DNA of 64,000 nucleotides from Monocercomonoides exilis PA203. Taxonomy: Eukaryota > Protista > Preaxostyla. Positions 3,382 through 64,000 of this stretch are shown in pieces. Numbering within the stretch: the first letter of the stretch is position 1; each line of letters starts with the position of its first letter. A program made the translations under genes and the position numbers. The notes beneath the pieces are model-generated. The model saw only the letters and a program-made list of their open reading frames with translations, made no database searches and was not told where the DNA came from. Location: assembly GCA_001643675.2 (NCBI GenBank), contig LSRY02000015.1:186001-250000 (forward strand), in the 5' to 3' direction.

Positions 3382-5580
3382 CTGGAAAACGGTTATTCGA
3401 TTGATCTGAAAAAAAAAATGTTGAAATGCTATGGTGATGATCTTTCATCAATTTTCATATTTTGAAAAGAAGATGTGACTCAATTTCTGAGCATGAATTC
3501 TTCGCAAAAAATCGACTACAGACGCACATCATCCCTTATATGTTTTCCATAATTAATTGATTCAACATTTTGAAAACAAACTTCGAGTATGAACTCCTCT
3601 TGTCGTTTTCTTTCGAAAATTTTTGAATTGAGCCAATATCCCTCATTTTCAAACGAATGAATACTATTTTTGGCAAAAAATGGTGAAAACACAATAATTT
3701 TTAATTGCTTCAAGTTTTGCAACTTTTTGACTCTCACGAAAGACAAAATTTAGAATTTCTAAAAAATTGGTAGGTTTTCAAGATCAAACAAAGATCCAGG
3801 AACAAAAGCAACTTCAAATAATAGCAGGTTCACAGAAAATGTAGATGATATAATCATTGAATTGACAATTTTAGAAAATAAAAATGCAATCACAATAAAA
3901 ATATTGGATTCACTCAGAAACAAACAAATGGGAGATTCGGGATATATTTTGGATTTTTCAGATTTTTTAATTCATTTTTCAAATGCTACAAAGCTTGACT
4001 GATCAAAGAAAAAAAAGCTTTATTTTATTAAAGACAAATAAAATAAAAAGACCTTGAAAAGAGTCTCCTTGGCCATTATTCTCCATCAGCAATATGTATA
4101 GCTTTCCTCCGAAAAGAGAAGAAAGAGAGCATCTGCAATATGGATCCAAACATGAGCAATTTATTCATTAAATCAAATTAATGTGATTCCGCTTGAAATC
4201 TTCGAGAAATAGTGTAACTATAATTCTTTGAAACAATAATTATTGTCAGCTGCATTTGCCATAGAGAATACAAAAAAGTCCAAACACAACATTCACGCTG
4301 ATGAATTTCATTTCTTTTGCAATTTATTCTTTCTCCGAATGATGCTATCCTTCCATGATTGAGCAAATTCAATATTTGGTATATTTGTAATTGTTACCTC
4401 AAATCAGCCACAACTATTTATCAGCTTTGGATTTTTGCACTTGCAAAGGTTGAGAGAACATCATGTTATTATCATTCTTTTGCGACTGTTGTTTCATATG
4501 GAATTTCTCTCTGAATAATCGTTTGTAATTGTTTTTTTTCAAATTTTTTGTGTTCCACATTAACATTTTTAATTTGCTAATCATGTTCAAAAGAGTTTGT
4601 TTAGCATTATTTTGCTCGATTGCAAGTGTAACTTGATTGGAGGGAAATATTTATGTGATCTGAAGAACTTGGATATCGATCTTCTTTTGGATCATCGTTC
4701 TTGTTTTAATAGATCATTATGAGTTTATTTATTGAAATAGATATGTAAATGAAGCGCGATTTAAGAAGAGCATGACTATATTAAGAACATGGGACTGATG
4801 ATCAACTTTATTTTTGTACGAAATTTTTTCATCGCCTCAGATCCTGACATTTGCGAAATGGCATCAAGAGCAATTATTAAACTGGTTAAGATTAAAAGCA
4901 AAAACAGCTTGCGTTGTATCTTTGAATCAAACGAAACATTCGAATTTTGGGTCTTTTTGAAAGATTCAAAGTTATGTGAATTTTTCATCGAAAAAGTTGT
5001 GAAGCTATTAATTTTTTTTTAAATTGATACTAAAAGCACCAATTGCATTATTCTGTTTATGAAACAAACTTGTCGTTTTTGAAGAAAACTGAAATGTTTA
5101 ATTTTTTCATTTCAATGAAATCATTAATTTTTGTTGATAATTATCAAAATTATAAGTTAGACTTCAATTTTTCGAAATAGATTCTTTTATTTTGAAATGA
5201 TTATGATTTCCAAATAAAATTCTAAAAAAATTGTGCCATTATCAGATGATAATTACGAAATTTTGTTTCAAACGGTGTGATGCTCATTTGAAAAGTATTT
5301 TGACAACCATTTCAAACTTGAAAGGAAAAAAAAAATAGAAAGTGAAAACAGAATCCAAATACAGTTTTCTTTTTCTTTTCTTTCATGAATATTTACAAAA
5401 AAATAATCAAAAATCAATGTGAATTGCTCATCAATTGCCAACGGCATATTAAATACAAATCATGAAATATCAAAATAAGAGGTTCTCCTATCAACACTAA
5501 AGAAAAGGGGAAAAAAAAAAATATTAATTTGTAAATAGAGTAAATAGAGTCATAAGAAAGCGAATGGAATGTTGTAAACA

Positions 5581-42369: not shown

Positions 42370-45300
42370 GAAAAGATAACAAACATTTCATTCCTTCTTT
42401 TTCTGTTGAGAGATGCCACTTAATATGTCATGTCCCTTGAAGCTAGAAAATTTATGGTGATAAGAAATTATCATAGAATAAATTGCGCAATGAAAACCAT
42501 GTTTGTGCAAGCAGAAAAAAAAATTCAAAAAAAAAATGAAAAACTTTGATTCCAGAAAACAAACATCTAAAAGGTGTTGGTGACAAAAGTGGTGTTCAAA
42601 GAGTGGAAATTAATTATTTGTTTTCTATTCTAATAAAAATGAATAACATTTTAATTGTCAAGAAAACCGCCATCAATTTCTTTTCTTCTTTAGAAAAGAA
42701 AAGACTATGCAGGAAGATGTAACTTTGTTATTTCGACTTCCACAGAATGATCAGAAATCCTATATCTTTGATTCTCTTTTAGCTTATGCCCTTGTGCGAA
42801 TAAGGAAAATGAACTTTTCTTCTTCTTGTCTGTGCTATTCACTGTTCAATCCGTCTTGGGTTCCATCGTCCTCTCTATGCATTTGTGACTTCTTTCCTCT
42901 TGTCCTTGTCATCCTGGCAGTCTTCGTTTTCACCTCTTCCACCAACTCCTCCATAGAAGCCTCAACTTCTTCACACTTGGATTCTTTTTCTGAAAGGGCT
43001 CCATCAGTGGATTGTTCTCTTTTTTCTTCCTCTTCATCACTAACTATCGGACTTTCTTCCTTTTCACAGTCACCAATCTTCTGTTCCTTCATTGTTCCAG
43101 CAATTACTCGTGCCATTGACGATGCCAAATTAATTTTGAAATAGTGCTTAACAAGAGTATTTGTCTTCGGTGAAAGCCTAGCAAACTTGGCAATCTGTGA
43201 AGGCGGGATTCCTGCTATTGTTAATGTTGACAAGGTTGCTGCCTTAAAAGAGTACGGCTTGAATCTCTGAGGAACTCCTGCTTCCTTCATTGCATCCTTA
43301 GCAAACTTGCGGATACCCGAAGAAGTAAGCGGCTCGAATGTTGTTGTGTTGAGCAGAAGTTTGTTGCTGTTCTGTTTTTGTTTTGCCAGAAAATACAAGT
43401 CTTTTATTGCTGAAGTTGGACATATTTGTGGGAGTTCCGGAAGAAAAGGAACTGCAATCTCTGATCGTGTGTGTGATGTTTTCAACACTGTATCCAACTT
43501 CACACCTTCCTCGTCAAACTGAGAGTTCACCACGTTGACCCGCTCCAGTTCTGTAAATCTGCAGGCAGAGAAGAGCATTGTTAAGGTGATAACCTTCATT
43601 TTCAATGTATTGAATGATAACTTGTTGTTTGGGCCTAACTCGGTGAAGTATTTTAACAAAATATTCGGATTCCAAATCTCTGGAGCCATCTTCTTTCTTG
43701 ATGTGTCGTTTCTTTGGAATGCACGGAATAGGATCTTGATGATAGCAACATCTCCCAATGATGTATTGAAGGCTAGAACTGAATAAAATGACACTGCTGC
43801 TCTTATCATCTGTATTACAGAAACCTTGAAGCCTCAATTCTTCATTGTGTAAAAACAACCGCGTATCTGACGGTCCAGTCCGTCAAGTTGTCTAGTATAT
43901 GCCCATGGGCACACTTCTTCCACTGGTCTGAAAAGTGCGCGAAACAGAATAAATATCCATCCCATGTCGTTTGTGCAATTCCAGCCTTGCACTCCTCTGC
44001 GAGCTCCAAGGGGACATTTCTTTCATGAAGCGCGTGCAGTCACCAGGCTTCTCCTCTCTCCTTAATGGATTCAGTAGGATAACTTTCATCTTCCCCGGAG
44101 GAAGGCAGGCTCCCGTTTTCTTCATCAATGGTCACTCCCGAAGAATCTTGGAGCTGTAATTCAATTTCAAGCTGTAATAATTACTCGTTCGAAGTGGGAT
44201 GTTCCAATTCTAACCCTTCCAGCTCGGCAAAAGTATAATCGCTCGAGCATTCTCCATCTGAGCCTTTCGTATTACCATCGGAATCAGAGGTATCTGTGGA
44301 TGAGCTAGAACACATTCGTTGCTCCAAGGAACTGTCAATCCGTCTTCTGCAATTGGACTGCTCACTCCACACAATCTTTCCACTTTGTGATTGCGTTTAA
44401 ACGCAAAAGCATCGAGAGTCGGTCTCACTTTCAACTGTGCATGAACCTCTTCGAGTGCTTCGTCCTTTATCTCGTAGTCGCCTGCTCTTTCCAATCGAGA
44501 CAGCGCATCCGCTCTGTGGTTCTTTCTTCCTGGAAGATGTTGTGCTTTTATTGTCAGATTCCTCGCCTCCATCCATTTCCTTATCTTGCGAAGCACTGAA
44601 CGAAGATTCTTCCCCGCGTTCCAACGATTTATGTTGAAAACCACTGAGCTGTTGTCCGATTGATGCAAGAGACGAGATATTTTGTTGTCCTGAATTGTCT
44701 GAGAAAATAAGGAAGCGAAAGCTAAACAACTTGTTGTTCTCTGAAGTTGGACGATTGACAGCGGGCAGAGTGGGGGAATTTGGCGTGCCAATCCATTATG
44801 TTGTTGTTCACTCTGAATGTTGCACCCCATGCTGTTTCCGCAGCATCCGTTGTTAGCGTTGCTTAAGGAGAAAATACTGGTTGAAGTTGTCGAGGCTTGT
44901 TCAGGATCAACACACATTTGCATTTATGAATCTCCCTCAACACAATAGCATTCATCTTCATCATCCCGCTCCATCCACATATCTTGGCATTCTTCTGCAT
45001 GAGACGACGAAGAACTATGAGGTGAAGTGACGCATCCTGGTTTACGAATCTTACTGCGCTGAGCTTTCCAACTGCTGAGGCAAAATCCTTTATTCGAACT
45101 GTTTTGGCTCTTATTGCCTTCACTCTCCATTGACTCAGCATCGCTTTGGGAGATCCCAACCTCTCCTCGCACAATTGAACCGTGAATGCTTCCGTGTCCC
45201 ATGCAAACCCCAGAAAAGTGAACTTTCACCTCGGGATAAATGAACAATTGTACTTGTTGATAATCAAGCCCAGATTTTCCAAAAATCGAGTTACCTCGCT

Positions 45301-46630
45301 TGTGATTTCTTTCAACACGCTGAAATCGTGATGTTGGAGAATTAGATCGTCCAATCATGACATCACTCTCACATTCCGTCTTATTTTGGTTTTTGTTGAT
45401 AATTTCTTCAAAAATTTTGTGAAAAACCTTGGAGGATCTGAGTATCCGAACGGCATGTCGTTGAAAGCATAGTCGATGCCTTCGAATCTGAATGTGAGAT
45501 GTGGTCTGAGTTCGTTTGAAACCGGAATTTGACAGTTCGTTTGAGACAAATCCATTGCCACAACAAAGTCGTTCCTCATTCTCAACTTTTCTTCTGTTCT
45601 TTCATTCTCGCATTTGAAATGGATTTTGTCATTGCTGCTTTTTGTGTTCTACAATCAAAAAAATAGACTACGTGCTCCAGATTTCTTTAACATGATGAAA
45701 ATGTTGTAATGAAAATTTTCATCTATGTGAGGAATTCTGCTCACAATCCCTATTTCCAGCTGCTCCTTCAATTCCTTTTGAAAGGACATCCTTTGTTTCC
45801 TGCTCATTTGAGATTCTCCGTCCATGAATGTCATATTTCCCAAACAATTTTTTGCCATTCGATTGCACCAATGAGCCTAGACTCCATTTTTGATGAGATT
45901 TCCTCTGTTTATTTCTCATCCACTCTTGAATACAATTCGCTGTCCGACCTCATATCTTTTCTTCTTCTGGATTCTTTCTCGTCTGGTCTACTATTTATTA
46001 TTCTGAATTCCCGCGGTTCGTCCTGTTGTGTTTTTCTTCCAATACTTTTTTCTTGGTCCTGTGCTGCGAAATATGGACTATTGAAAATTTCTCTGAAAAA
46101 ATACCTTTTTCCTCAAGCTATTTGTTGCTTCGGATGATATTTTTGGAAGAAGAATCCTTTTTAATGAAAAATAAAAGAATGTGTGTCCCTGTTGTCTCTT
46201 CTGTTTTCTCGAGAATTCTACCAAAATGTGTATTTGGACCTGCGTCAAAAGTCTTCCTGCTGAAGCAGACTCCATTTTCTTTGCTTCCGCAAAACCAAAT
46301 CTTGCCTGAATTCGTTCTCTTCTTGCCTCCTGCATTGCTTGTGCAATCAGAATCAAGATGTCTTTTGCAATTTCATCAACGGCATCTGCCTTCATCTTGA
46401 TTCTTTGTATCGATAACAAAATGGCTTTGTAAGCAGGAATCAGATATCTCTCCGCTTATTCCCCCGCTTAATCCAATGCATCTTTATCCCAATATTCCGT
46501 TCAAACAGCTGCTGGAAGACTGTGGCCGATAATAGAGTTGAAATTGAGCTTATTACAGAATGAAGATACTTCGTTTATATTGGATCTTAAATATTTTTCA
46601 TCGAAAAGTGATATTGTTGGTTCAGCTTAT
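42370..46630 (-). mobile_element. DIRS-like tyrosine-recombinase retrotransposon copy 1 (degenerate, 5'-truncated)
   Basis: Gag fragment (EARRERIQARFGF), RT (DLSQ, MPFGYSDPPRFFTK, S*LDD), RNaseH (SDNSSVV, RADALSRLE), MT-like (LDAFA...AHPQ), YR 42835-43809; ITR-like motif at ~42390-42436. Confidence 0.9.
42835..43809 (-). CDS. Tyrosine recombinase (catalytic part) of DIRS copy 1
   Basis: SACRFTEL, LKTS, PYSFKAA, FARLSP, KHYF. Confidence 0.8.
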   Translation of the reverse strand: MIRAAVSFYSVLAFNTSLGDVAIIKILFRAFQRNDTSRKKMAPEIWNPNILLKYFTELGPNNKLSFNTLKMKVITLTMLFSACRFTELERVNVVNSQFDEEGVKLDTVLKTSHTRSEIAVPFLPELPQICPTSAIKDLYFLAKQKQNSNKLLLNTTTFEPLTSSGIRKFAKDAMKEAGVPQRFKPYSFKAATLSTLTIAGIPPSQIAKFARLSPKTNTLVKHYFKINLASSMARVIAGTMKEQKIGDCEKEESPIVSDEEEEKREQSTDGALSEKESKCEEVEASMEELVEEVKTKTARMTRTRGKKSQMHREDDGTQDGLNSE

Positions 46631-54339: not shown

Positions 54340-55144
54340 CTGCTAGAGGAAATTGTCGGCCCATTGCCAAACACAGCTTGGTCAGAAGAAAGTGCAATTC
54401 CTGAAACATTAGAAGGTTGGGGAGTGCCAATCATTCTTTATCACGAAAAGCGACATGACCTATAAAGTGGAATATCTTGAAAAGAAGAGAATAAATTGAA
54501 TGGCAGTTTCTTTCATAATAAAAATGTGTTGCATTTGAATAGTGTTAAAAACAGCACAAAACACAATTTTAAAAATAACTATAACATTTACACTCGAAAT
54601 AATCTTTTTTTATTTACAATAAGTTTGATTATTCTGTTGCTCAAGAATCATTTCTTCAAATTCAAAAAGCTCATTCTATTGGTTTCATGAAACATGAAAC
54701 AGCATAATTCATCGATTTGTGAAATCTTGGACTAGAGAAACCCTTTTTTTTACAAAAAAGAAATTAAATTATAAATGGAAATTATGCAATAAAAATACAA
54801 TATTGAAAGAGAAAATGGTTATTTCACTTCCTTCTCTTATATTGATGAGAGCGCCGCGTTATGGGTTAGTAACCCAGCTGATCAAAATGGCACTTAATGA
54901 AATGGTGAACAAATGAGCAAATGAAAATTTTAAAAAGAGACCTGACACTTGGCAAATTGAAAATTATTCCAAATGCAGTGAAAACACATGTTTGAAACAA
55001 GAAAAATACAATTTTTTGAAATTGAATGTTTTAAAATATATACTCTAAAGAGAAGGAATTATAAGCGTTGAATCTCTTCCCTCATTGTTATTCAGCAATG
55101 ACGAATTCATAAGGGGATGGGACGAAACACTTGGGGAGGGAGAA

Positions 55145-55197
55145 AGAGAAGGATGTGAACTAACCATTTTCTCTTTCAATCAAAACACAAGCATTTT
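55145..55197. repeat. Internal complementary region (ICR) of DIRS copy 2
   Basis: agagaaggatgtgaactaaccattttctctttcaat (55145-55180) is the near-perfect reverse complement of 54802-54837. Confidence 0.75.
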
Positions 55198-55219
55198 GAT
55201 TACAGAGAAAACATTGATT

Positions 55220-56194
55220 TCACTTCCTTCCCTTATATTTTTGAGAGCATAGATAATTGGGAAGATTTGACAATGTTAATAAGCTTGAACAAATATTCTT
55301 TTCTTCGTGTTGCTTCTTTTCCATTTCTTTTCTTCTTTGAGATCTTGTGCAGATAATGAATTCAATCTTAGCCTCGCTGATAACTGTCTGTGAAGCATTG
55401 TTTTCTTCATTGTCCTCTGGTTCTTCAACTTTATCTGGGAATGCAAATTCTGTTTGTTGTTTTCGATCTCCGTTTTCACATATTTCCTTTGTTGGTGTTT
55501 GCTCTTCTGAATTTGAACTGGTATTTGTTTCGGAATCGGATTCCGCCTCAGAATCTGAATCGGACTCTGACGCAGACCCACTTTTTTCAGGTTGGAGAAC
55601 AGTTGAATTGCATCTTGCTATCACGTGGGCCAGCTTGCTTGATACATCTGATTGGACGTAATGCTTTGTGATGGTGTTGCTTCTAGGAGAGAGTCTGGCA
55701 AACTTAGCAATTTGGGCTAATGGAATTCCTGCCATCGTTAGCGCAGTGATTGACGCATGCTTCAATGAGTAAGGCCCGAAACACTTTGGAATCCCAGCAT
55801 CCTGTAACATTTCAGCTGCATAATTGCGAATCCTTCTTGCAGAGAGGGCAAGATGAGTTTTCTCATCAATGAATAGTGAAGTAGTATTTGGCTGAGATTC
55901 TTTGATTCTGTTCCAAAGTTCCTTTTCTGAAGCTGCTTGGCACACAAGCGGCTGTTCTTTTAGAAAAGGGATGATAATATTTGTTCGTTCTGTTGATGTT
56001 TTTAATGATGAATCGAGTTTTATTGAATTGTCTCCAATAGTTGAATTCTGTAGGTTAATCCTTTCCAACTCCGTAAAGCGACAGGCGGAGAACAACATAC
56101 ATGCACATATAGCCTTTTTTGTCAATACATAAAAGTCAAGAAACATGTTCTCTCCTAATGATGTAATTTTTTGCAGCAGGAGTTGGGGGTTCAA
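55220..56194 (-). CDS. Tyrosine recombinase (catalytic part) of DIRS copy 2
   Basis: SACRFTEL, LKTS, PYSLKHA, FARLSP, KHYV. Confidence 0.8.
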   Translation of the reverse strand: MNPQLLLQKITSLGENMFLDFYVLTKKAICACMLFSACRFTELERINLQNSTIGDNSIKLDSSLKTSTERTNIIIPFLKEQPLVCQAASEKELWNRIKESQPNTTSLFIDEKTHLALSARRIRNYAAEMLQDAGIPKCFGPYSLKHASITALTMAGIPLAQIAKFARLSPRSNTITKHYVQSDVSSKLAHVIARCNSTVLQPEKSGSASESDSDSEAESDSETNTSSNSEEQTPTKEICENGDRKQQTEFAFPDKVEEPEDNEENNASQTVISEAKIEFIICTRSQRRKEMEKKQHEEKNICSSLLTLSNLPNYLCSQKYKGRK

Positions 56195-59148
56195 GATCCC
56201 TTGTTCGTTATTTTTCTACCAATTTTCTGATCTTCGGAATGATTATAATAGTCTTTGCATGAGTCCAGATTCTCCCAGTCCTCGATTGCACAGTAATTCT
56301 GAGATGAGCGATAATGCAGCGCATGTTTGTCTGAGCGTAGAAGCCTTCTTCCCTTTGTCTTTCAGGCTAATGAAAATGGAAGTTTATTTTTCAACCCACT
56401 CACTCCAAGCTTCAGGTGGTTATCTGTTCATATTATCTTCCCATATTTCACCAAACGCTTACAACAATATATAAATCCTCACACCATGCTTTCGGCAATG
56501 AAATAATTGTATTCATCGATTTCCCTTACGGAATATCCCTTTGAAACAAGCATTTTCCGAAACCATTTTTCTCCTTGCGATTCTAAGGATTGATGAGAAC
56601 TATTCTCATTCTGTTTTGCGGGAGACTTGCTTCCATCCGTTTCATCCATCTTCCATCCTTCAAAACCTGGTTCTGTTCTTTCCATCTCCATTCGCAGTGT
56701 CTCGACATTCTTATCAGTGGTTCCCATATCTGCCCTCTCCAATCTGGCATCAGAAGAAGAACATGTGCATTTTCCTCTATTGCTTTTAAAATCGTTGGGA
56801 CTATTAGTGGAATCGGTGGATGGGCTTAAATAACGCCTCTTTGCCATGATTGTTGGAGTCCGTCTTCGTTGAGTTTGCTTCATGGACCGCACCATCTGTA
56901 AGCTTTCGTGTTCTCGTTCGTTGCAAACGCATCCAACGTTATTTTGAGATTGAGGTTTTCCGTGATCTCGTTTAGCTCTTCTTGTTTAATGGAGAAATCT
57001 CCCCCTCTTTCTAGCCTGGATGGAGCATCTGCTCTGACATTCTTCATCCCTGGCAAGTGTTGGGCTTTTATTTGAATGTGATTGTTCTGTGCAAGTGTCC
57101 ATATTTTCATCAGCAACTTCCTGAGGTTTGTTCCTGCATTCCATCGATTGACATTGAAAACCGCTGCTGTATTGACTGGTCTGATTAGCAATCTGCAGAC
57201 TTTGTTCACCTGAAGAATGTGTTTGAAATGGTTGAGCGCTCGATTGATTGCAAATAATTCCCTGAAATTCGAGCTCTGGCATCTCAATTTCCCTGGAAGC
57301 GATTGATGGAAATCGTATTTCTTGTTGTTCATTTGAAGAACAGCTCACATAGCTCTCTCTCTGACGCATCTGTCGTTAAGGTTGCTTGCTGCTGGAATAA
57401 TGAGCAAAGCTGTCTCGGTTTGTTCGCATTCAGCCTCGATATCCATTTTTGAATGCTCGGAAGGATTGATGGGTTGATTCTCATCTTTCCTTTCCACCCC
57501 ATCTTTCTGACCATTCTGTTCAGCAGCATGCATATCGATGGAAGAAGGAGTGAAGCTTCCTTGAAAACGAAGCGAGTTGCACTTAGCTTGCCAATGTACG
57601 ATGCGAAATCTCTCACTCTTGTTTGCTCACATTTCAGTGCTCGGCGCCTCCATCTGTAGCATTCCGTGAGCAATTCTTTCTTTCTGTCTTTCTCTAAAGT
57701 TGCGGTGAAGTTGGAAGTGTCCCATGAATATCCGAGGAATGAAAAACGATTTGATGGTTTCATGAGGCTCTTTTCCAGATTAACAATATGTCCAATCTTC
57801 TGAAATATACTTATAACTTCTTGTGCGATTCTCTTTTGTTCTTGCTTGTCTTGATGGAGCAAGACAATGTCGTCCAAATATGCGACAGCTTTCACATTCA
57901 ATATTTTTCGAATGAACGAAATGACATTTCTCATGGTTTTTGTTAATATTCTTGGAGAGTCCTTGTTACCGAAAGGCATGCTGGTGAAGCAATAAAAGTC
58001 TTTGTTGAACTCGAAGCTTCGAAAAGGAGTGAAATCCTCTGAGACCTTGATGAGGTTGAAAGCTTGGCTTTAATCCCGAGTGACAGCAAAATCCCCATTC
58101 TTTATAATTCTCTCCACAGATCGATGATCCTCTTGTTTGAAGTGAATTGTTTTTATTGCATTGTTTAACCTCCTGCAATCCACAATCTGTCTCCAGCTCC
58201 CGTTCCTTATTCTGACTACAAATATTGGATTGAGAAATTTCACTTCGTTTTTGGTGATTTTCATGACAATTCCAGTTTTCACTTGAACTTTGATTAATTC
58301 CGCCAAAGCTTCCCTTGCTTCTAGTGATTGCTTCGGTCTCCTGCAATATTCCAGAGAATTGATAAGGGTTTTGCGAGCTTTGGCACTCCTCCAAACCGGA
58401 ACAACTCCTCTTTTGATGATCTTTTCTCCTCCCGCCATTTTCCAAACCTTGGCAAATAACGCTGTTCTTCCACAAATTGTGAAGTTGTGTTCTATTGAGA
58501 GTTTGTTTTGTCACCAGAACTCCCTCTTGAGTAACCCCTTGGAGCTCTGCTTGTTATGAATGATCGTCTTGCGCTGGTCGTTCGGGGACTATCTCGAAAA
58601 AACCGATAATTCTTTGTTCCGCTTTGCATTCCCCTGGTTTGTTTCTTCCTTGCATATGAATTTGTAATGCTTGCCGATCCCCATTTCAATTTTGTGGATG
58701 TTTTCTTTGATTTTTTCTAAATTTCTTTTTGTCTTTGAGTTAACAGCGATGATGAAAACTCGTCTTTCATTTTTCCTGCTTCAGAAAACCCATATCTTGC
58801 TTGTATTCTAACGTGTCTAGCTTCTTTCAGAACTTGGAATTAAAACAAACATGAATCTGCTATCATTTCTTTTGTTGTATTTCCTGACTTGATTGTTGAG
58901 AATGCCGAGAAAAGCGACTTTATTGCAGGATAAAGATATGTTTCTGTTCGTTCTCCTGCACGATCGAGCGCGTCTTTCCAAAACACTTTGGATCTTGTAA
59001 ATGGTGGTGGAGCATTCTGGATAAAATGACTCAAATCTTCATCTTTCATTAATGAAAGCGCTTCGTTAATTTTATTCCTTGGAAGATGCATATCGTAAAG
59101 AGAAACATTTGGTAGCTGCCAAAATATTTCGATAAATGTTTGCAGCAA

Positions 59149-59245
59149 TTAAAGTGCATAAGCACCTTAATTATCAAGAAAGTGTTTCATCAATTCCTTC
59201 TCTTTTTGAGAGACGCCACAATCTATGGGTCAGTCGCCACATTTG
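59149..59245 (+). repeat. Left terminus / left ITR of copy 3
   Basis: 59176-59245 is inverted at 63662-63730 (one indel); 59147-59213 is perfectly inverted at 63429-63495. Confidence 0.95.
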
Positions 59246-59249
59246 ATCA

Positions 59250-60164
59250 ATGATGTCTGCTTCGCAATTCCCTCCGATTGTTGGACATACGCCGTCGGCT
59301 GATTCTGCAATGCAGCACAGTGGGGCGCAAAGCCAACCAGGGACCTTGTCACAACCTAACATCTTTTCTTCCTCTTCAATTTTTTCACCTTCTTCATCGG
59401 AAGGTTTAGTACAGGAGTTGACCCCTTCAGCTGACAGAAAGGAGAATGATGATTTCTTAGACATATCACAACTTATTTGTCAGGAGTTTGAGGACATTTT
59501 CGGACAAACGCCGAATATTTCAATTTTTGATCTAAGGATTTCCCCAAGATCCGTTCAAGTTGTTGTTGAGGAGTATAAGACACAGGATTTTAGCCCGTTG
59601 TTATCGCTTGAACCGCACACTGCCAAGAGAACAGAAAACTGGATTAACGACGCATTAGATCAGGCGGGGTACAAGGTGGAGATTTTTCTTTTCCAGGCGA
59701 TTAAAGCTGCGCTCATAGGTTTAGCCGAGATACCGACTTCAAGTGAAGGTGCAAAACAAAGGCTTGCTGACATCTTGATAATGATTACCAGGGCTCTTCA
59801 AGAGGCACGAACGGTTCGAATTCAAGGCAGGTTTGGTTTCAGGGCTGCCACAGCGATGAGCACTGACGCTTCTACAAGAATTCTCACAGAGAGACAGGAA
59901 CTGATTCTCAAAGAAACAAGGCAGGAAGCCAAGCTAGAGAGAGGCTTCCAGAGACCAGCACTTCCTATTACACGTGTTCAGGCTCCTGTTAGAGAACAAC
60001 CAGGAACACTTCAAAGAAGATTTAGTTATCCCATTTCTCACACAAATACACGGTTTTTTCGGAGATACCCCCGGTCCTCAGCCCCCACAAGAAGACAGCA
60101 ATTCGGAAGAAGGAGGAACCAGAGCAGTTGGAGCAGGAGACCAGGGGTGCGTCAACAATTTTAG
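59250..60164 (+). CDS. Gag-like ORF1 of DIRS copy 3
   Basis: 304-aa ORF starting right after the ITR; Arg-rich C-terminus; DALD.AG and EAR..RIQ.RFGF motifs shared with copies 1 and 2. Confidence 0.85.
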   Translation: MMSASQFPPIVGHTPSADSAMQHSGAQSQPGTLSQPNIFSSSSIFSPSSSEGLVQELTPSADRKENDDFLDISQLICQEFEDIFGQTPNISIFDLRISPRSVQVVVEEYKTQDFSPLLSLEPHTAKRTENWINDALDQAGYKVEIFLFQAIKAALIGLAEIPTSSEGAKQRLADILIMITRALQEARTVRIQGRFGFRAATAMSTDASTRILTERQELILKETRQEAKLERGFQRPALPITRVQAPVREQPGTLQRRFSYPISHTNTRFFRRYPRSSAPTRRQQFGRRRNQSSWSRRPGVRQQF

Positions 60165-63100
60165 GTCCAGTTCACAAGGAAACAGAGCAGATGAGGCACA
60201 TTGGAGGGAGAACCGCTTTGTTTCTCTCAGCATGGAAGCGAATCGGAGAAGAGAAATTGATAAGCAATGGAGTGCAGGCCATGTGGAAAAGCAAACAGTC
60301 CAGGAAAGCTCTCAGCAGAGCCCAGTTCAGAGATGGAGCGTGTCTTCTCAACCAACAAAAGATCGAGGAATTCAAGAAAATATTAGAAGAACAGTTACGA
60401 ACAGGAGTTGTTATCCCAATGGAGCAGAGGGAGGTCAAACACAGAAACAATGTATTTCTCATTCAAAAGAAGTCAGGCAGCTGGAGACAGATTCTCGATT
60501 GTTGGAAACAAAACGCAGCAGTGAAGAGAACACATTTCAAGTGCGACGGAGAAAAAACAGGAGAACGACTAATAAGACGGAAAGATTACGCAGTATCCCT
60601 AGACTTGGAACAAGCTTATTATTTAATTCCAGTTTCAAGAGAACTAATTCCCTATCTTGCTTTCAGATTCATGGGAAAAGACTACTCCTTCAAAGGCATG
60701 CCTTTCGGCTTTGTAGATGCACCGCGCCTGTTCACACATATAATGAGGAAGGTGACAGAATAGATAAGAAGAAGATGGGATGTCAGAGTCGTTGCCTATT
60801 TGGACGATCTTCTTTTTCTGCATCAAGATCAAGAAGTCTTGAAGAAAATAATTCAGGAAATCATCTCGTTTCTAGAAAGCCTTGGCCTTCTGATAAACAA
60901 AAAGAAATGCAACCTCATGCCGAGTTCGCAGTTCAGCTTCCTTGGATTCGAATGGAATACAACCAGCTTCGATGTGTGTCTAACGAAGGAAAGAAGAAAG
61001 GCAGTGCGAGAGCTGTGTCACAAGTGGGAGAGAAGTTGCATAAGAGCCAAGACCGTCAGAGTGAAGGATTTCGCATCATACGTGGGAAAGCTCAGTGCAA
61101 CGCGCTTCGTTCTTTCAGACGCATCTTTCCACCTCCAATCCATCTACAAATTGTTGCAGAAAGGAGTTACGACAGGCGGATGGGATGGAATGATGAAGCT
61201 GAATGCGTCAATCCTCCTGCAGATAAGAAAATGGAGATGGATGTTGATGAAGAACCCCAGACGCAGACTAACTCCAGTGTTTATTCCAGAAGCAGTGCTA
61301 ACCACAGATGCATCAGAAAGCTCCTGGGGAGCAACCCTCAGACTAAACAGAATGTCACTAGATTGTCACAGTCGTTTTCCATTCGCGGTGAAAAACCAAT
61401 CATCCAACTTCAGAGAACAAAAAGCTGTGGAACTTGCCCTTACACATTTTGCACCAATCCTAGCAGAGAATCGGATTTCACAGTTGCAACTTCGTTCAGA
61501 CAACTCAGCAGTTGTTTTCAACGTGAACAGAAGGAATGCAGGAAGGAATCTCCGTCAAACACTCAAAAGGATATGGACATTGAAGGAGAAACTGAAGATA
61601 GTCCTGAGAGCAGTTCATCTCCCCGGATTGCAAAACACAAGAGCCGATGCTTTGTCCCGCCTGGAAAGAGCAGGAGACTACGGCATTGCAGACAGCGAGC
61701 TCAAAGAAATCTTGTCAGTTCTTCAAGTTACTCCAACGCTGGACGCCTTTGCAGCTCAACACAACCACAAGGTCGATCGTTGGTGCGGAATTGGAAGCCC
61801 ATTGGGAGAAGACGGTCTAGCATATCCATGGAAGAACGAGTGCGTTCTGGCACACCCCCCAGTTCCCCTGATTCCAATGACGATTCGGAAGGCACAGAAG
61901 GAGAGAGTACCAGTAGTATTACTCCTGCTGAATTGGAAGGGGCAGGACTGGGATGTGCTATTGGAGAAGACGCCTCATCGGACATTCAAATGGAGGAGTC
62001 TGAGAACAGTACTGAGAAAGGGTCCATCAATGGCAAGCACAGGTGCATGTCTTCCTCCAGGCCGGTTAAGAGTCATATTCATCAATCCACCAGAGTTAAA
62101 GGCGAGAGCTGGTGGAGAAGGGCTTTGGAAGAAAGATCTTTCCAAGTTTCATTGGCAGAGGAGTGCATATCGGGAATTGCTCAGTCGACGTGGGATGGAT
62201 ATTTATTCGGCTTCGCACACTTTGGAGAACAGTGGGAAAAGAGTGATATGGGCATAATTCCAGAGGATATTCACGAGTGGGCAGCTCGATGTTCCAGTAT
62301 GTTTATTACACTGAGAGACAATGGAATGAAGCTGTCATGTTTGCAGCTCATCCGCTCAGCAGTTTCATTTTTCACAAGCTTGGTTTACAACACAAATTTA
62401 GTGGATATTCCGATAATAAAAATATTGTTTAGAGGGTTTAGAAGAACAGAGAGGACAAGAAAAAAGAAGGTCCAAGAAATTTGGAATCCGAAGACCATTC
62501 TGACATTCTTTTCTAATCTTGGAGAAAATCAAAGCTTGAGTTTCAAACATCTGACAATGAAAGCCATTGTGCTCACCATGTTATTCACTGCGTGCAGGTT
62601 TACAGAGTTGGAAAGAGTAGATATGGAACGATCCAGATTCGAGCAGGAAGGAATATATCTAGACACAAGGCTAAAAACATCACTTAATCGAACAGAGATT
62701 GCTGTTCCTTTTTTAAATGAAAGCCCTTCAATTTGCCCAGCTTCGGCCATTCAAGTTTTGTGGAAAGAGATAAAGAAAAGAAAACCAGATGGAAATTAAT
62801 TGTTTTTGAATACCGAAACTTTTCACCCTCTTACAGTGAAAGGTATTAGACGATTGGCAAATAAGAGGTTGAAGGAAGCAGGAATTCCAGGCCATTTCAC
62901 TCCTTATTCAATAAAGGCTGCAACGCTTTCAACGCTAACGATGTCTGGAATTCCACCAACTCAGATTGCGAAGTTTGTTCGTCTTTCCCCCAGAACAGAC
63001 ACTTTGGTGAAGCATTATGTGAAGGCCAATCTTGCTTCAACCTTGGGGAAAGTGATTGTCTCAACTATGAATGTTCCCAGTGAAGAGTTAGCAAACAATC

Positions 63101-63423
63101 CGTGTGCAGAAAATGGTGTCAAGAAGTGCGTCAGACCAGACAGAGACCAGAAGAACAAAAAGGAGAGACGAGAAATGGAATCTGGGATGGTACTGAGGGA
63201 TAAGAAACGCCTGATGAAGCCAGGTTTGAGTGAGGAAGAAGCTAAAGATACTGTTGAATTCCCTTCCAGAGTAGACGAGCCTGATGAGGAGATGGAGGAA
63301 CAGAAGTCACTTGGAGAACAATTCATTATTCGAACAAGATCACAAGCAAAAAAGGAGGAAGAGAGCAACAACGCAAAGAAGACGCACACTGTGGTAGTAA
63401 TGATGGCTTCATCATCCAACTAA
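59974..63423 (+). pseudogene. Tyrosine recombinase ORF of copy 3, overlapping the whole RT ORF; one in-frame TAA at 62797-62799
   Basis: 941-aa ORF continued in frame by a 207-aa ORF; TACRFTEL, LKTS, PYSIKAA, FVRLSP, KHYV. Confidence 0.9.
60128..62257 (+). pseudogene. RT-RNaseH-methyltransferase-like ORF of copy 3, with one in-frame TAG at 60761-60763
   Basis: KKSGSWRQILD, LDLEQAY, MPFGFVDAPRLF, AYLDD, FLGF; TTDAS, SSNFRE, RSDNS, ADALSR; LDAFA...AHPPVP. ORFs 60128-60763 and 60800-62257 are in the same frame. Confidence 0.9.
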
Positions 63424-63428
63424 TTGAT

Positions 63429-63529
63429 TCTCTCAAAAAGAGAAGGAATTGATGAAACACTTTCTTGATAATTAAGGTGCTTATGCACTTTAATTAAAAA
63501 AGAAAGTGGAGAATCAATTCCTTCTCTTT
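63429..63529. repeat. Internal complementary region (ICR) of copy 3
   Basis: First part is the reverse complement of the element's first 67 bp; second part is the reverse complement of its last ~36 bp (4 mismatches). Confidence 0.92.
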
Positions 63530-63661
63530 GCCCACCACCGTTTTCACTCCCACCCTTTGAAGTTCTGTTTTCAAAACTGTTGATGTTTTTGTTGTTCCTT
63601 CTCTTTGCGCCTTTTGGTTTTAGAAGCGCAAAGTGGTTTTTATCCAATTCACCAAAACACA

Positions 63662-63736
63662 CAAATGGGCGACTGACCCATAGATTGTGGCGTCTCTCAA
63701 AAAGAGAAGGAATTGATGAAACACTTTCTTTTTTAA
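63662..63736. repeat. Right ITR of copy 3 plus short ttttaa extension
   Basis: caaatgggcgactgacccatagattgtggcgtctctcaaaaagagaaggaattgatgaaacactttctt is the inverse of 59176-59245. Confidence 0.95.
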
Positions 63737-64000
63737 AGAAGACTCTCCTTCATCTTCTTTAATTCGTGCTGGATCTGTCCGGCTATCAAGCTCCGACTGA
63801 ACGCTTGATTGGGAAGCGGAATAACTCCCTGATATTGAAGGAATTGCACTCGGAGGGCCACCAGAAAGCGGAGCTGACAAGGTTCGGTCGCGAGTCCGAT
63901 TCCCATGAAAATAGTCGACATTCTTCTTTGTGATCAGCGATCGTGACTAACCCATAACGTGGCGCTCTCATAAATATAAGAGAAGGAAGTGATATAAATG

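Follow-up and report, generated by a model that had tools for sequence, protein, structure and literature searches.

The segment from 59149 to 63736, read on the plus strand, of a 64,000-nucleotide stretch of the genome of Monocercomonoides exilis, a mitochondrion-less protist, is almost certainly a single copy of a DIRS1-like retrotransposon, a tyrosine-recombinase element of the type that has inverted terminal repeats (ITRs) and an internal complementary region (ICR). The whole stretch, hereafter the window, corresponds to C9:186001-250000 of the nanopore assembly of strain PA203 (82,301,135 bases in 101 contigs; PMC8767320), which is also the genome that was searched for further copies. The element is the third of three DIRS copies in the window and is called copy 3 here. 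A first-pass annotation, made from the letters alone, had assigned the DIRS1 layout to it, and all the structural features of that layout were found both in copy 3 and in 16 full-length copies. As far as they can be read from sequence, the features that define a DIRS1-like element are all present, the first open reading frame (ORF1) being a candidate gag by its position and by weak similarity.

Structure and insertion site of copy 3

Copy 3 is 4588 nucleotides (nt) long and lies within the gag region of another element, copy 2, which is read on the minus strand; its ends are common to 22 other copies in the genome. It begins with a left extension (lE) of 27 nt (59149..59175), which is complementary to the ICR only, not to the right end, and which contains a small hairpin. 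The left ITR follows (59176..59245), and the element closes with the right ITR (63668..63730) and a short right extension of 6 nt (63731..63736), whose terminal AA is common to element and target. The ITRs form a perfect inverted match of 63 nt (59176-59238 against 63668-63730), and with one gap they agree at 69 of 69 positions (element positions 28-97 against 4514-4582), which bears out the length of about 70 bp first given for them. Both this ITR size and the total length fall within the ranges published for DIRS1-like elements, 66-316 bp and 3974-6283 bp respectively (Piednoel et al. 2011, PMC3266345), and the architecture agrees with the scheme of lE, divergent ITR, conserved ITR and ICR described there.

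The ICR occupies 101 nt (63429..63529) and consists of two halves of about 66 and 36 nt. Its left half (63429-63495) forms a 67-nt perfect inverted match with the left terminus (59147-59213), and its right half (63494-63529) is 89% complementary (32 of 36 positions) to the right terminus (63701-63736). The two halves abut, and the reverse complement of 63429-63529 thus runs from the right end straight into the left end, as the first-pass annotation had read it; judged by its sequence, the centre of the ICR is the putative mark of a circle junction. Short-read contigs of other copies end exactly at 63494-63496. As single-stranded DNA the ICR is predicted to fold into one long hairpin (-31.7 kcal/mol, z = -9.9), which is to be expected because its halves mirror the ITRs; the centroid fold retains nothing but a short stem where the left terminus begins. 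The sole direct repeat of at least 30 nt in the element is the 38-nt overlap between ICR and right ITR.

The element into which copy 3 has inserted belongs to a different DIRS family. The 3' part of copy 2 lies at 54802..59148 on the minus strand, with a right terminus of its own at 54802-54873 and its own ICR at 55144-55248, and its 5' part lies at 63737..64000, continuing to window-equivalent position 64031 just beyond the window end; a hairpin in its lE is analogous to that of copy 3. Elsewhere in the genome copy 2 has five paralogues that are uninterrupted, and in these the equivalents of 59148 and 63737 are directly joined. Because they read straight across the insertion point, the insertion of copy 3 can be called exact and free of target duplication. 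One AA stands on either side of copy 3, one from the target and one from the element junction, in agreement with the rule that DIRS1-like elements share 2-3 nt with their target (PMC3266345, PMC7192593).

A profile of 18 insertions of the copy 3 family shows a target preference. The target is T-rich from -12 to -7, has a pyrimidine at -3 (16/18), an A at -2 (16/18) and at -1 (18/18), an A at +1 (13/18) and an A at each of +3 and +4 (15/18 each), and the left junction is AA or TA in all 18 insertions. The target hence resembles the element's own junction, namely a T-run, AA and then the start of the left end, a likeness that is predicted if a circle undergoes conservative site-specific recombination with a chromosomal site to which it is only loosely matched.

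Copies in the genome and the variation of their ends

The copy search scored the best candidates only, and the numbers that follow are lower bounds from which intact copies may be missing. There are at least 23 near-full copies of the copy 3 family, 85-97% identical, on many contigs and with identical ends; their unrelated flanks argue against a spread by segmental duplication alone. The pairing of termini with the ICR, whose absence from other copies the first-pass annotation had named as evidence that would speak against it, recurs in 16 full-length copies. In most of them the match between left terminus and left ICR half reaches 97-100%, the right terminus matches the right ICR half at 100% in eight and at 34-36 of 36 positions in most, with a few lower, and the ITRs match each other at 91-100%.

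In most copies a block of 5 nt, which is the 'divergent ITR' of Piednoel et al. (PMC3266345), differs between the two ITRs, and the ICR half that belongs to each end is complementary to the version found at that end. Each end is therefore kept in step with the ICR and not with the other end. Copy 3 is atypical in this respect: its right terminus carries the left-type block, which is why its ITRs are perfect and its right terminus agrees with the ICR at only 32 of 36 positions. Left-type right termini also occur in copies that are not the closest kin of copy 3, and they probably arise repeatedly.

Copy 3 lies within a star-like burst and is moderately young, not freshly inserted. It had been called young on the strength of its perfect 67-nt ICR match and of a single stop in each of two frames; these observations hold, but its nearest copy is 2.8% different and its terminal branch measures 0.013 (1.3%), so that the word needs qualifying. 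Sister copies encode proteins that are 100% identical to NCBI entries labelled Monocercomonoides exilis, in keeping with the oxymonad-like host that had been guessed from the window alone. The NCBI gene models on these copies bear the names 'putative Reverse transcriptase', 'putative Transposon Ty3-G Gag-Pol polyprotein' and 'uncharacterized protein MONOS_...', and none of them is named DIRS or tyrosine recombinase.

Coding regions

Three overlapping frames are read on the plus strand. ORF1 (59250..60164) is open and encodes a gag-like protein of 304 amino acids (aa); it is 34% identical to ORF1 of copies 1 and 2, its similarity to ORF1 of the outside relatives L028 and L037 is weak, and no Pfam family matched it in a Pfam search. 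The pol frame (60128..62257) encodes reverse transcriptase (RT), RNase H and a methyltransferase-like (MT-like) domain. The RT domain (approximately 60455-60952) matches Pfam RVT_1 at 1.6e-28, exceeding the curated cut-off, and carries YLDD at 60797-60808. The RNase H domain (approximately 61301-61660) was placed by alignment with relatives, in which the columns D439, E475 and D503 and an N..AD..SR motif are conserved.

The assignment of the MT-like domain (approximately 61690-62257) has moderate support, from alignment columns and from a structure model. The domain aligns with that of the relatives with its invariant columns kept, and Pfam Dam is found in 4 of the 13 aligned relatives; the domain of the window protein itself falls below the Dam cut-off. 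A model of the domain (predicted local distance difference test, pLDDT, 83) matches only methyltransferases in the PDB, namely PCIF1, KsgA, M.TaqI and Dam, all of the N6-adenine/S-adenosylmethionine kind, with modest scores (E from 6e-4, template modelling (TM) score 0.43-0.50).

The recombinase frame (59974..63423) overlaps the whole of pol, and such long overlaps are found in half of the annotated DIRS1-like elements (PMC3266345). Its predicted catalytic domain (approximately 62545-63018) contains the Arg-I motif at 62590-62616, YSIK at 62902-62922 and KHY at 63007-63018. The uninterrupted homologous frame of the sister copy L003 matches Pfam Phage_integrase (2.1e-8; 34.6 bits against a cut-off of 27.1), and the structure modelled for the catalytic domain (pLDDT 86) resembles those of Cre, XerA, lambda Int and Tn1549 Int (E 3.5e-6, TM 0.57-0.67). 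A phmmer search matched no solved structure by sequence; a weak integrase profile match (E 0.29) served only to check the alignment of columns.

There are no frameshifts in the three frames of copy 3, and the single stop that had been noted in each of two frames is correct for the assembly: one in pol (60761-60763) and one in the recombinase frame (62797-62799), by which copy 3 is disabled. The pol stop is private to copy 3 (1 of 23 copies), and the recombinase stop occurs in 2 of 23; since they are so restricted, programmed read-through of the stops was ruled out. Short reads were available as contigs of four DNA runs, all from one sample. At 60759-60761, the third position of which begins the pol stop codon, all contigs of three of the four runs differ from the assembly in the three letters; the fourth run does not cover this place. 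The differing contigs may derive from other copies, and the pol stop is neither confirmed nor refuted by them.

The active site of the recombinase is unusual. All M. exilis lineages, which are 35-67% mutually identical, have Pro-Tyr-Ser-(Ile/Leu)-Lys where a frog DIRS recombinase and a solved integrase have HxxR, and Arg-Leu where canonical enzymes have Gly-Trp (box II); Arg-I, the beta-hairpin Lys and the Tyr are retained. We surveyed 163 proteins (P0044-P0206), comprising 150 among the exhaustive-search matches listed and the M. exilis proteins. Of 75 sequences with a Lys at the place of Arg-II, 69 also have an Arg immediately ahead of the box-II Trp/His; only 4 of 66 canonical sequences have that Arg. 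This suggests a relocated catalytic arginine, and the pairing is a clade signature that may go back to one evolutionary event, which is not the same as proof of compensation. The motif is not without precedent, since variants of the HSTR motif have been published: it is kept in only 13 of 28 annotated DIRS1-like elements, and AmDIRS2 of Allomyces has SDLK, with Lys at the Arg position as in copy 3 (PMC3266345). The non-canonical motif is for the same reason compatible with membership of the DIRS1-like group. The first-pass annotation had pointed to shared unusual motifs, and YSIK is indeed found throughout the clade, whereas both HSTR variants and left extensions are already on record for fungal and amoebozoan DIRS1-like elements (PMC3266345). 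The exact and duplication-free insertions argue for an enzyme that is active.

Proposed mechanism of transposition

The mechanism of copy 3 is very probably that of DIRS-1, and the cycle proposed here is the one worked out for this element in Dictyostelium. Four of its traces can be read directly in the M. exilis genome, namely the anatomy of the element, its precise insertion without duplication, the preference for a target and the termini that follow their own ICR half. For the RNA and cDNA steps, the circle and the catalysis by the recombinase we infer the course of events from homology with DIRS-1. A transcript that does not contain the outermost parts of the termini would be reverse-transcribed by the element's own RT and RNase H. 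The ends of the single-stranded cDNA would anneal to the two halves of the ICR, which would supply the template for the terminal bases that are missing and draw the two ends together. The product would be closed and then made double-stranded, giving a circle with the junction T-run/AA/left end. The recombinase would finally cross this circle with a junction-like chromosomal site (T-rich, pyrimidine-A-A, then A-n-A-A), leaving no target duplication and only an AA on each side.

The comparison with DIRS-1 of Dictyostelium discoideum is close in most respects. Both elements have a gag (putative in copy 3), a pol with RT, RNase H and MT-like domain, and a tyrosine recombinase in three overlapping frames, both have ITRs and an ICR complementary to both ends, and both insert without target duplication; in DIRS-1 the ICR has been shown by experiment to be essential (PMC7192593). 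DIRS-1 often inserts into copies of its own kind (PMC7192593), which is paralleled by copy 3 inside copy 2. Copy 3 differs in that its ITRs measure about 70 nt, far less than the roughly 300 nt of DIRS-1, its extension is on the left (27 nt, against only 6 nt on the right) where DIRS-1 has a right extension, the junction that it shares with its target is AA, and its recombinase has YSIK instead of HxxR.

Three observations weigh against this explanation. Firstly, each of the 23 sampled copies is interrupted by one or more stops or frameshifts and none has three open frames, which leaves current activity unproven; the genome-wide search for intact copies that had been suggested at the outset thus returned at least 23 copies, each of them damaged. 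Secondly, the canonical HxxR and the box-II Trp/His are absent, so that the predicted catalysis is not guaranteed. Thirdly, the contigs of the four DNA runs over 58900-63950 contain no joint of right end to left end, which is weak evidence against a circle because contigs drop rare molecules; the sole joint in them, 63528/63701 on opposite strands, is the complementarity of ICR and ITR itself.

It is quite possible, if not quite probable, that the family is a fossil which moved formerly and of which no copy is mobile now, even in trans. Besides the damage seen in every sampled copy, the terminal branches of the youngest cluster, at 0.4-2.5%, are in favour of this. However, open frames do exist on different copies, 7 of them having gag open, 3 having pol and 1 having the full recombinase frame, and the proteins of DIRS-1 act in trans (PMC7192593). 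Pairs such as L013/L022 are only 0.44% apart and yet have different flanks, and a search confined to the best candidates may have passed over intact copies. A recombinase profile search of the genome, with at least 150 scored loci and 399 candidates, moreover found many open frames of 1137-1227 aa, and the other M. exilis DIRS families to which these belong look better preserved than that of copy 3.

Relationship to other elements

The three DIRS copies in the window are only 34-67% identical in protein and represent different families, as divergent from one another as the first-pass annotation had stated. Together with the recombinase loci counted above and with the phylogeny, this supports its further suggestion of a diversified and possibly undescribed DIRS clade, as judged from sequence comparison. 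In a maximum-likelihood tree of RTs, built with unnamed DIRS-like relatives and Ty3-like outgroups, the four M. exilis families and a contig of GCA_009771425.1 form a 100/100 clade, separate from the other DIRS-like sequences and from the Ty3-like outgroups, which form a 100/100 group of their own.

The nearest relatives outside M. exilis by RT are L028, on contig WPCJ01145137 of GCA_009771425.1 (42% identity), and L038, L039 and L040, contigs of the Joint Genome Institute (JGI) metagenome 3300042619 (38-40%), the latter compared pairwise only and left out of the tree; the identity of 38-42% extends over about 640 aa of RT, RNase H and MT-like domain. One Logan contig reaches 31%, frog proteins about 32% over part of the length, and no named relative exceeds about 32% identity to the copy 3 RT. 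L038 is complete in its architecture: it has 63 nt of left terminus and ICR, 55-nt ITRs and 35 nt of right ICR and terminus all matching at 100%. The recombinases of L038-L040 have a Y-K signature as in M. exilis, and L028 has PYTIK and ARLSP motifs in a frame with a stop at the Arg-I codon. At the DNA level, by contrast, L028 and L038-L040 are unrelated to copy 3, and their G+C content is 46-57% against about 43%. By eye and without an alignment, the inner ITR of L038 resembles those of the M. exilis families. A word-indexed protein search with the recombinase returned M. exilis proteins only, and it was an exhaustive profile search that reached recombinase relatives outside this species.

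We tentatively propose, with a confidence that falls just short of even, that the M. exilis elements and their metagenomic relatives represent a deep and undescribed DIRS1-like lineage with a rearranged active site, in which the second catalytic Arg would have moved from HxxR (now YxxK) to the position before the box-II Trp/His. Among described elements, AcasDIRS1 of Acanthamoeba and AmDIRS1 and AmDIRS2 of Allomyces resemble copy 3 in having a left extension and a long overlap of frames, and AmDIRS1 also has a 2-nt junction (PMC3266345). In the 2011 survey left extensions were found only in fungi and amoebozoa (PMC3266345), whereas the host of copy 3 is a metamonad. Possible kinship with these elements is a lead taken from the tables of that paper.

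An assignment of copy 3 to the PAT-like, Ngaro or VIPER group instead of the DIRS1-like group is very unlikely. All of these, like the Cryptons, have a tyrosine recombinase, and the PAT-like elements also have an MT-like domain; the non-canonical recombinase motif and a tree made without named references leave some room for such a placement. Yet they are bounded by split direct repeats (A1-B1...B2-A2), while the ends of copy 3 are inverted repeats with an ICR and its only direct repeat is the 38-nt one; Ngaro and VIPER have no MT-like domain, which copy 3 has, and Cryptons, unlike copy 3, have no RT. That copy 3 is a Ty3/gypsy long terminal repeat (LTR) retrotransposon, as some NCBI product names of its sister copies would have it, is so improbable that it can be set aside: RT and RNase H are Ty3-like and there are weak matches to Ty3-like polyproteins, but long direct terminal repeats and a target duplication of 4-6 bp are absent, no rve integrase domain was found in Pfam searches of the element's proteins, and the Ty3-like sequences stand apart in the tree.

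Of the other features in the window, copy 1 (approximately 42555-46620, minus strand) represents a third DIRS family. It has an ICR-like stretch at 42555-42697, no convincing terminal inverted repeats were found for it, and it is probably truncated or eroded.

Structural variants and the quality of the assembly

Several natural variants of the copy 3 family bear on the proposed mechanism. Four copies have lost 264 nt between the two occurrences of the 38-nt direct repeat that is shared by left ICR half and right ITR: L009 (C21:94876-99180), L021 (C21:546244-550563), L022 (C21:320198-324517) and L023 (C47:641425-645745). The flanks of the four are distinct, and in the tree each of them pairs with a full-length sister copy, which means that the loss is recurrent; it may have occurred either during the restoration of the ends or through later slippage. 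The left end of the full copy L014 (G000:C27:598698-606289) adjoins 245 nt that repeat, inverted and without a difference, the sequence of L014 from the right ICR half to the right end. Such a product would be expected if a minus-strand cDNA had primed on the ICR with its 3' end and been extended to the end of the template, and perfect identity in a copy that is otherwise old may just as well reflect a recent rearrangement or an assembly artefact. L007 (G000:C80:641638-648987) stops at the ICR centre (element position 4347) and its flanks are inverted copies of each other, 100% identical over 1498 nt or more, which form a perfect palindrome around a 4.2-kb spacer. It is either a real inverted duplication that made use of the inverted repeat of left end and ICR, or an artefact of the nanopore assembly.

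Near-identical DIRS pairs with the same flanks, some of them inverted and tens of kb apart, were also seen (C80:1302164-1306218 and 1338234-1342287; C38:848834-853428 and C52:22686-27279; C1:382899 and 391743). Not all of the DIRS copy number is therefore due to transposition; a part stems from segmental and often inverted duplication.

That the repeat pattern of copy 3 as a whole is due to chance or to the nanopore assembly is refuted, even though L007 and L014 look suspicious and the stop at 60761-60763 is absent from the short-read contigs, because the perfect 67-nt and 63-nt matches are found again, in corresponding positions, in 16 copies that lie on different contigs, the metagenome contig L038 from an unrelated source has the same architecture, and a 126-nt short-read contig crosses the left junction without differences, reaching 25 letters into the element, which is below the 31 needed for a bridging record. 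An artefact of this sort can apply only to single bases and to L007 and L014.

Significance

The DIRS kind of element is well known, and the advance made here is incremental: M. exilis is a lineage for which no earlier description was found, our literature search having returned no paper that pairs DIRS with Monocercomonoides, oxymonads or Metamonada. In the 2011 survey DIRS1-like elements were confirmed only in unikonts, and the excavate record was uncertain, consisting of degenerate Naegleria copies found by similarity search only; a confirmation in excavates, it was noted, would shift the origin of the DIRS1-like group to an earlier time (PMC3266345). The M. exilis genome paper lists only 'LTR elements' amounting to 1.41 Mbp (PMC8767320). 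With about 4.6 kb for each of 150-399 recombinase loci, DIRS elements would occupy about 0.7-1.8 Mb, which is of the same order, and they could make up much of that LTR figure.

The finding corrects gene models whose present names are 'Ty3-G Gag-Pol' or 'uncharacterized protein'. Variants of natural origin, that is, termini that follow their ICR half, left-type right termini, four 264-nt deletions and a fold-back copy, form a data set on how the ICR rebuilds the ends of DIRS elements. With dozens of structurally complete copies in several deeply divergent families, M. exilis offers clean evidence from a metamonad on where tyrosine-recombinase retrotransposons occur and how old they are. If it holds true, a DIRS1-like lineage that is structurally intact in Metamonada would place the group's origin closer to the root of the eukaryotes, or would imply transfer between distant protists.

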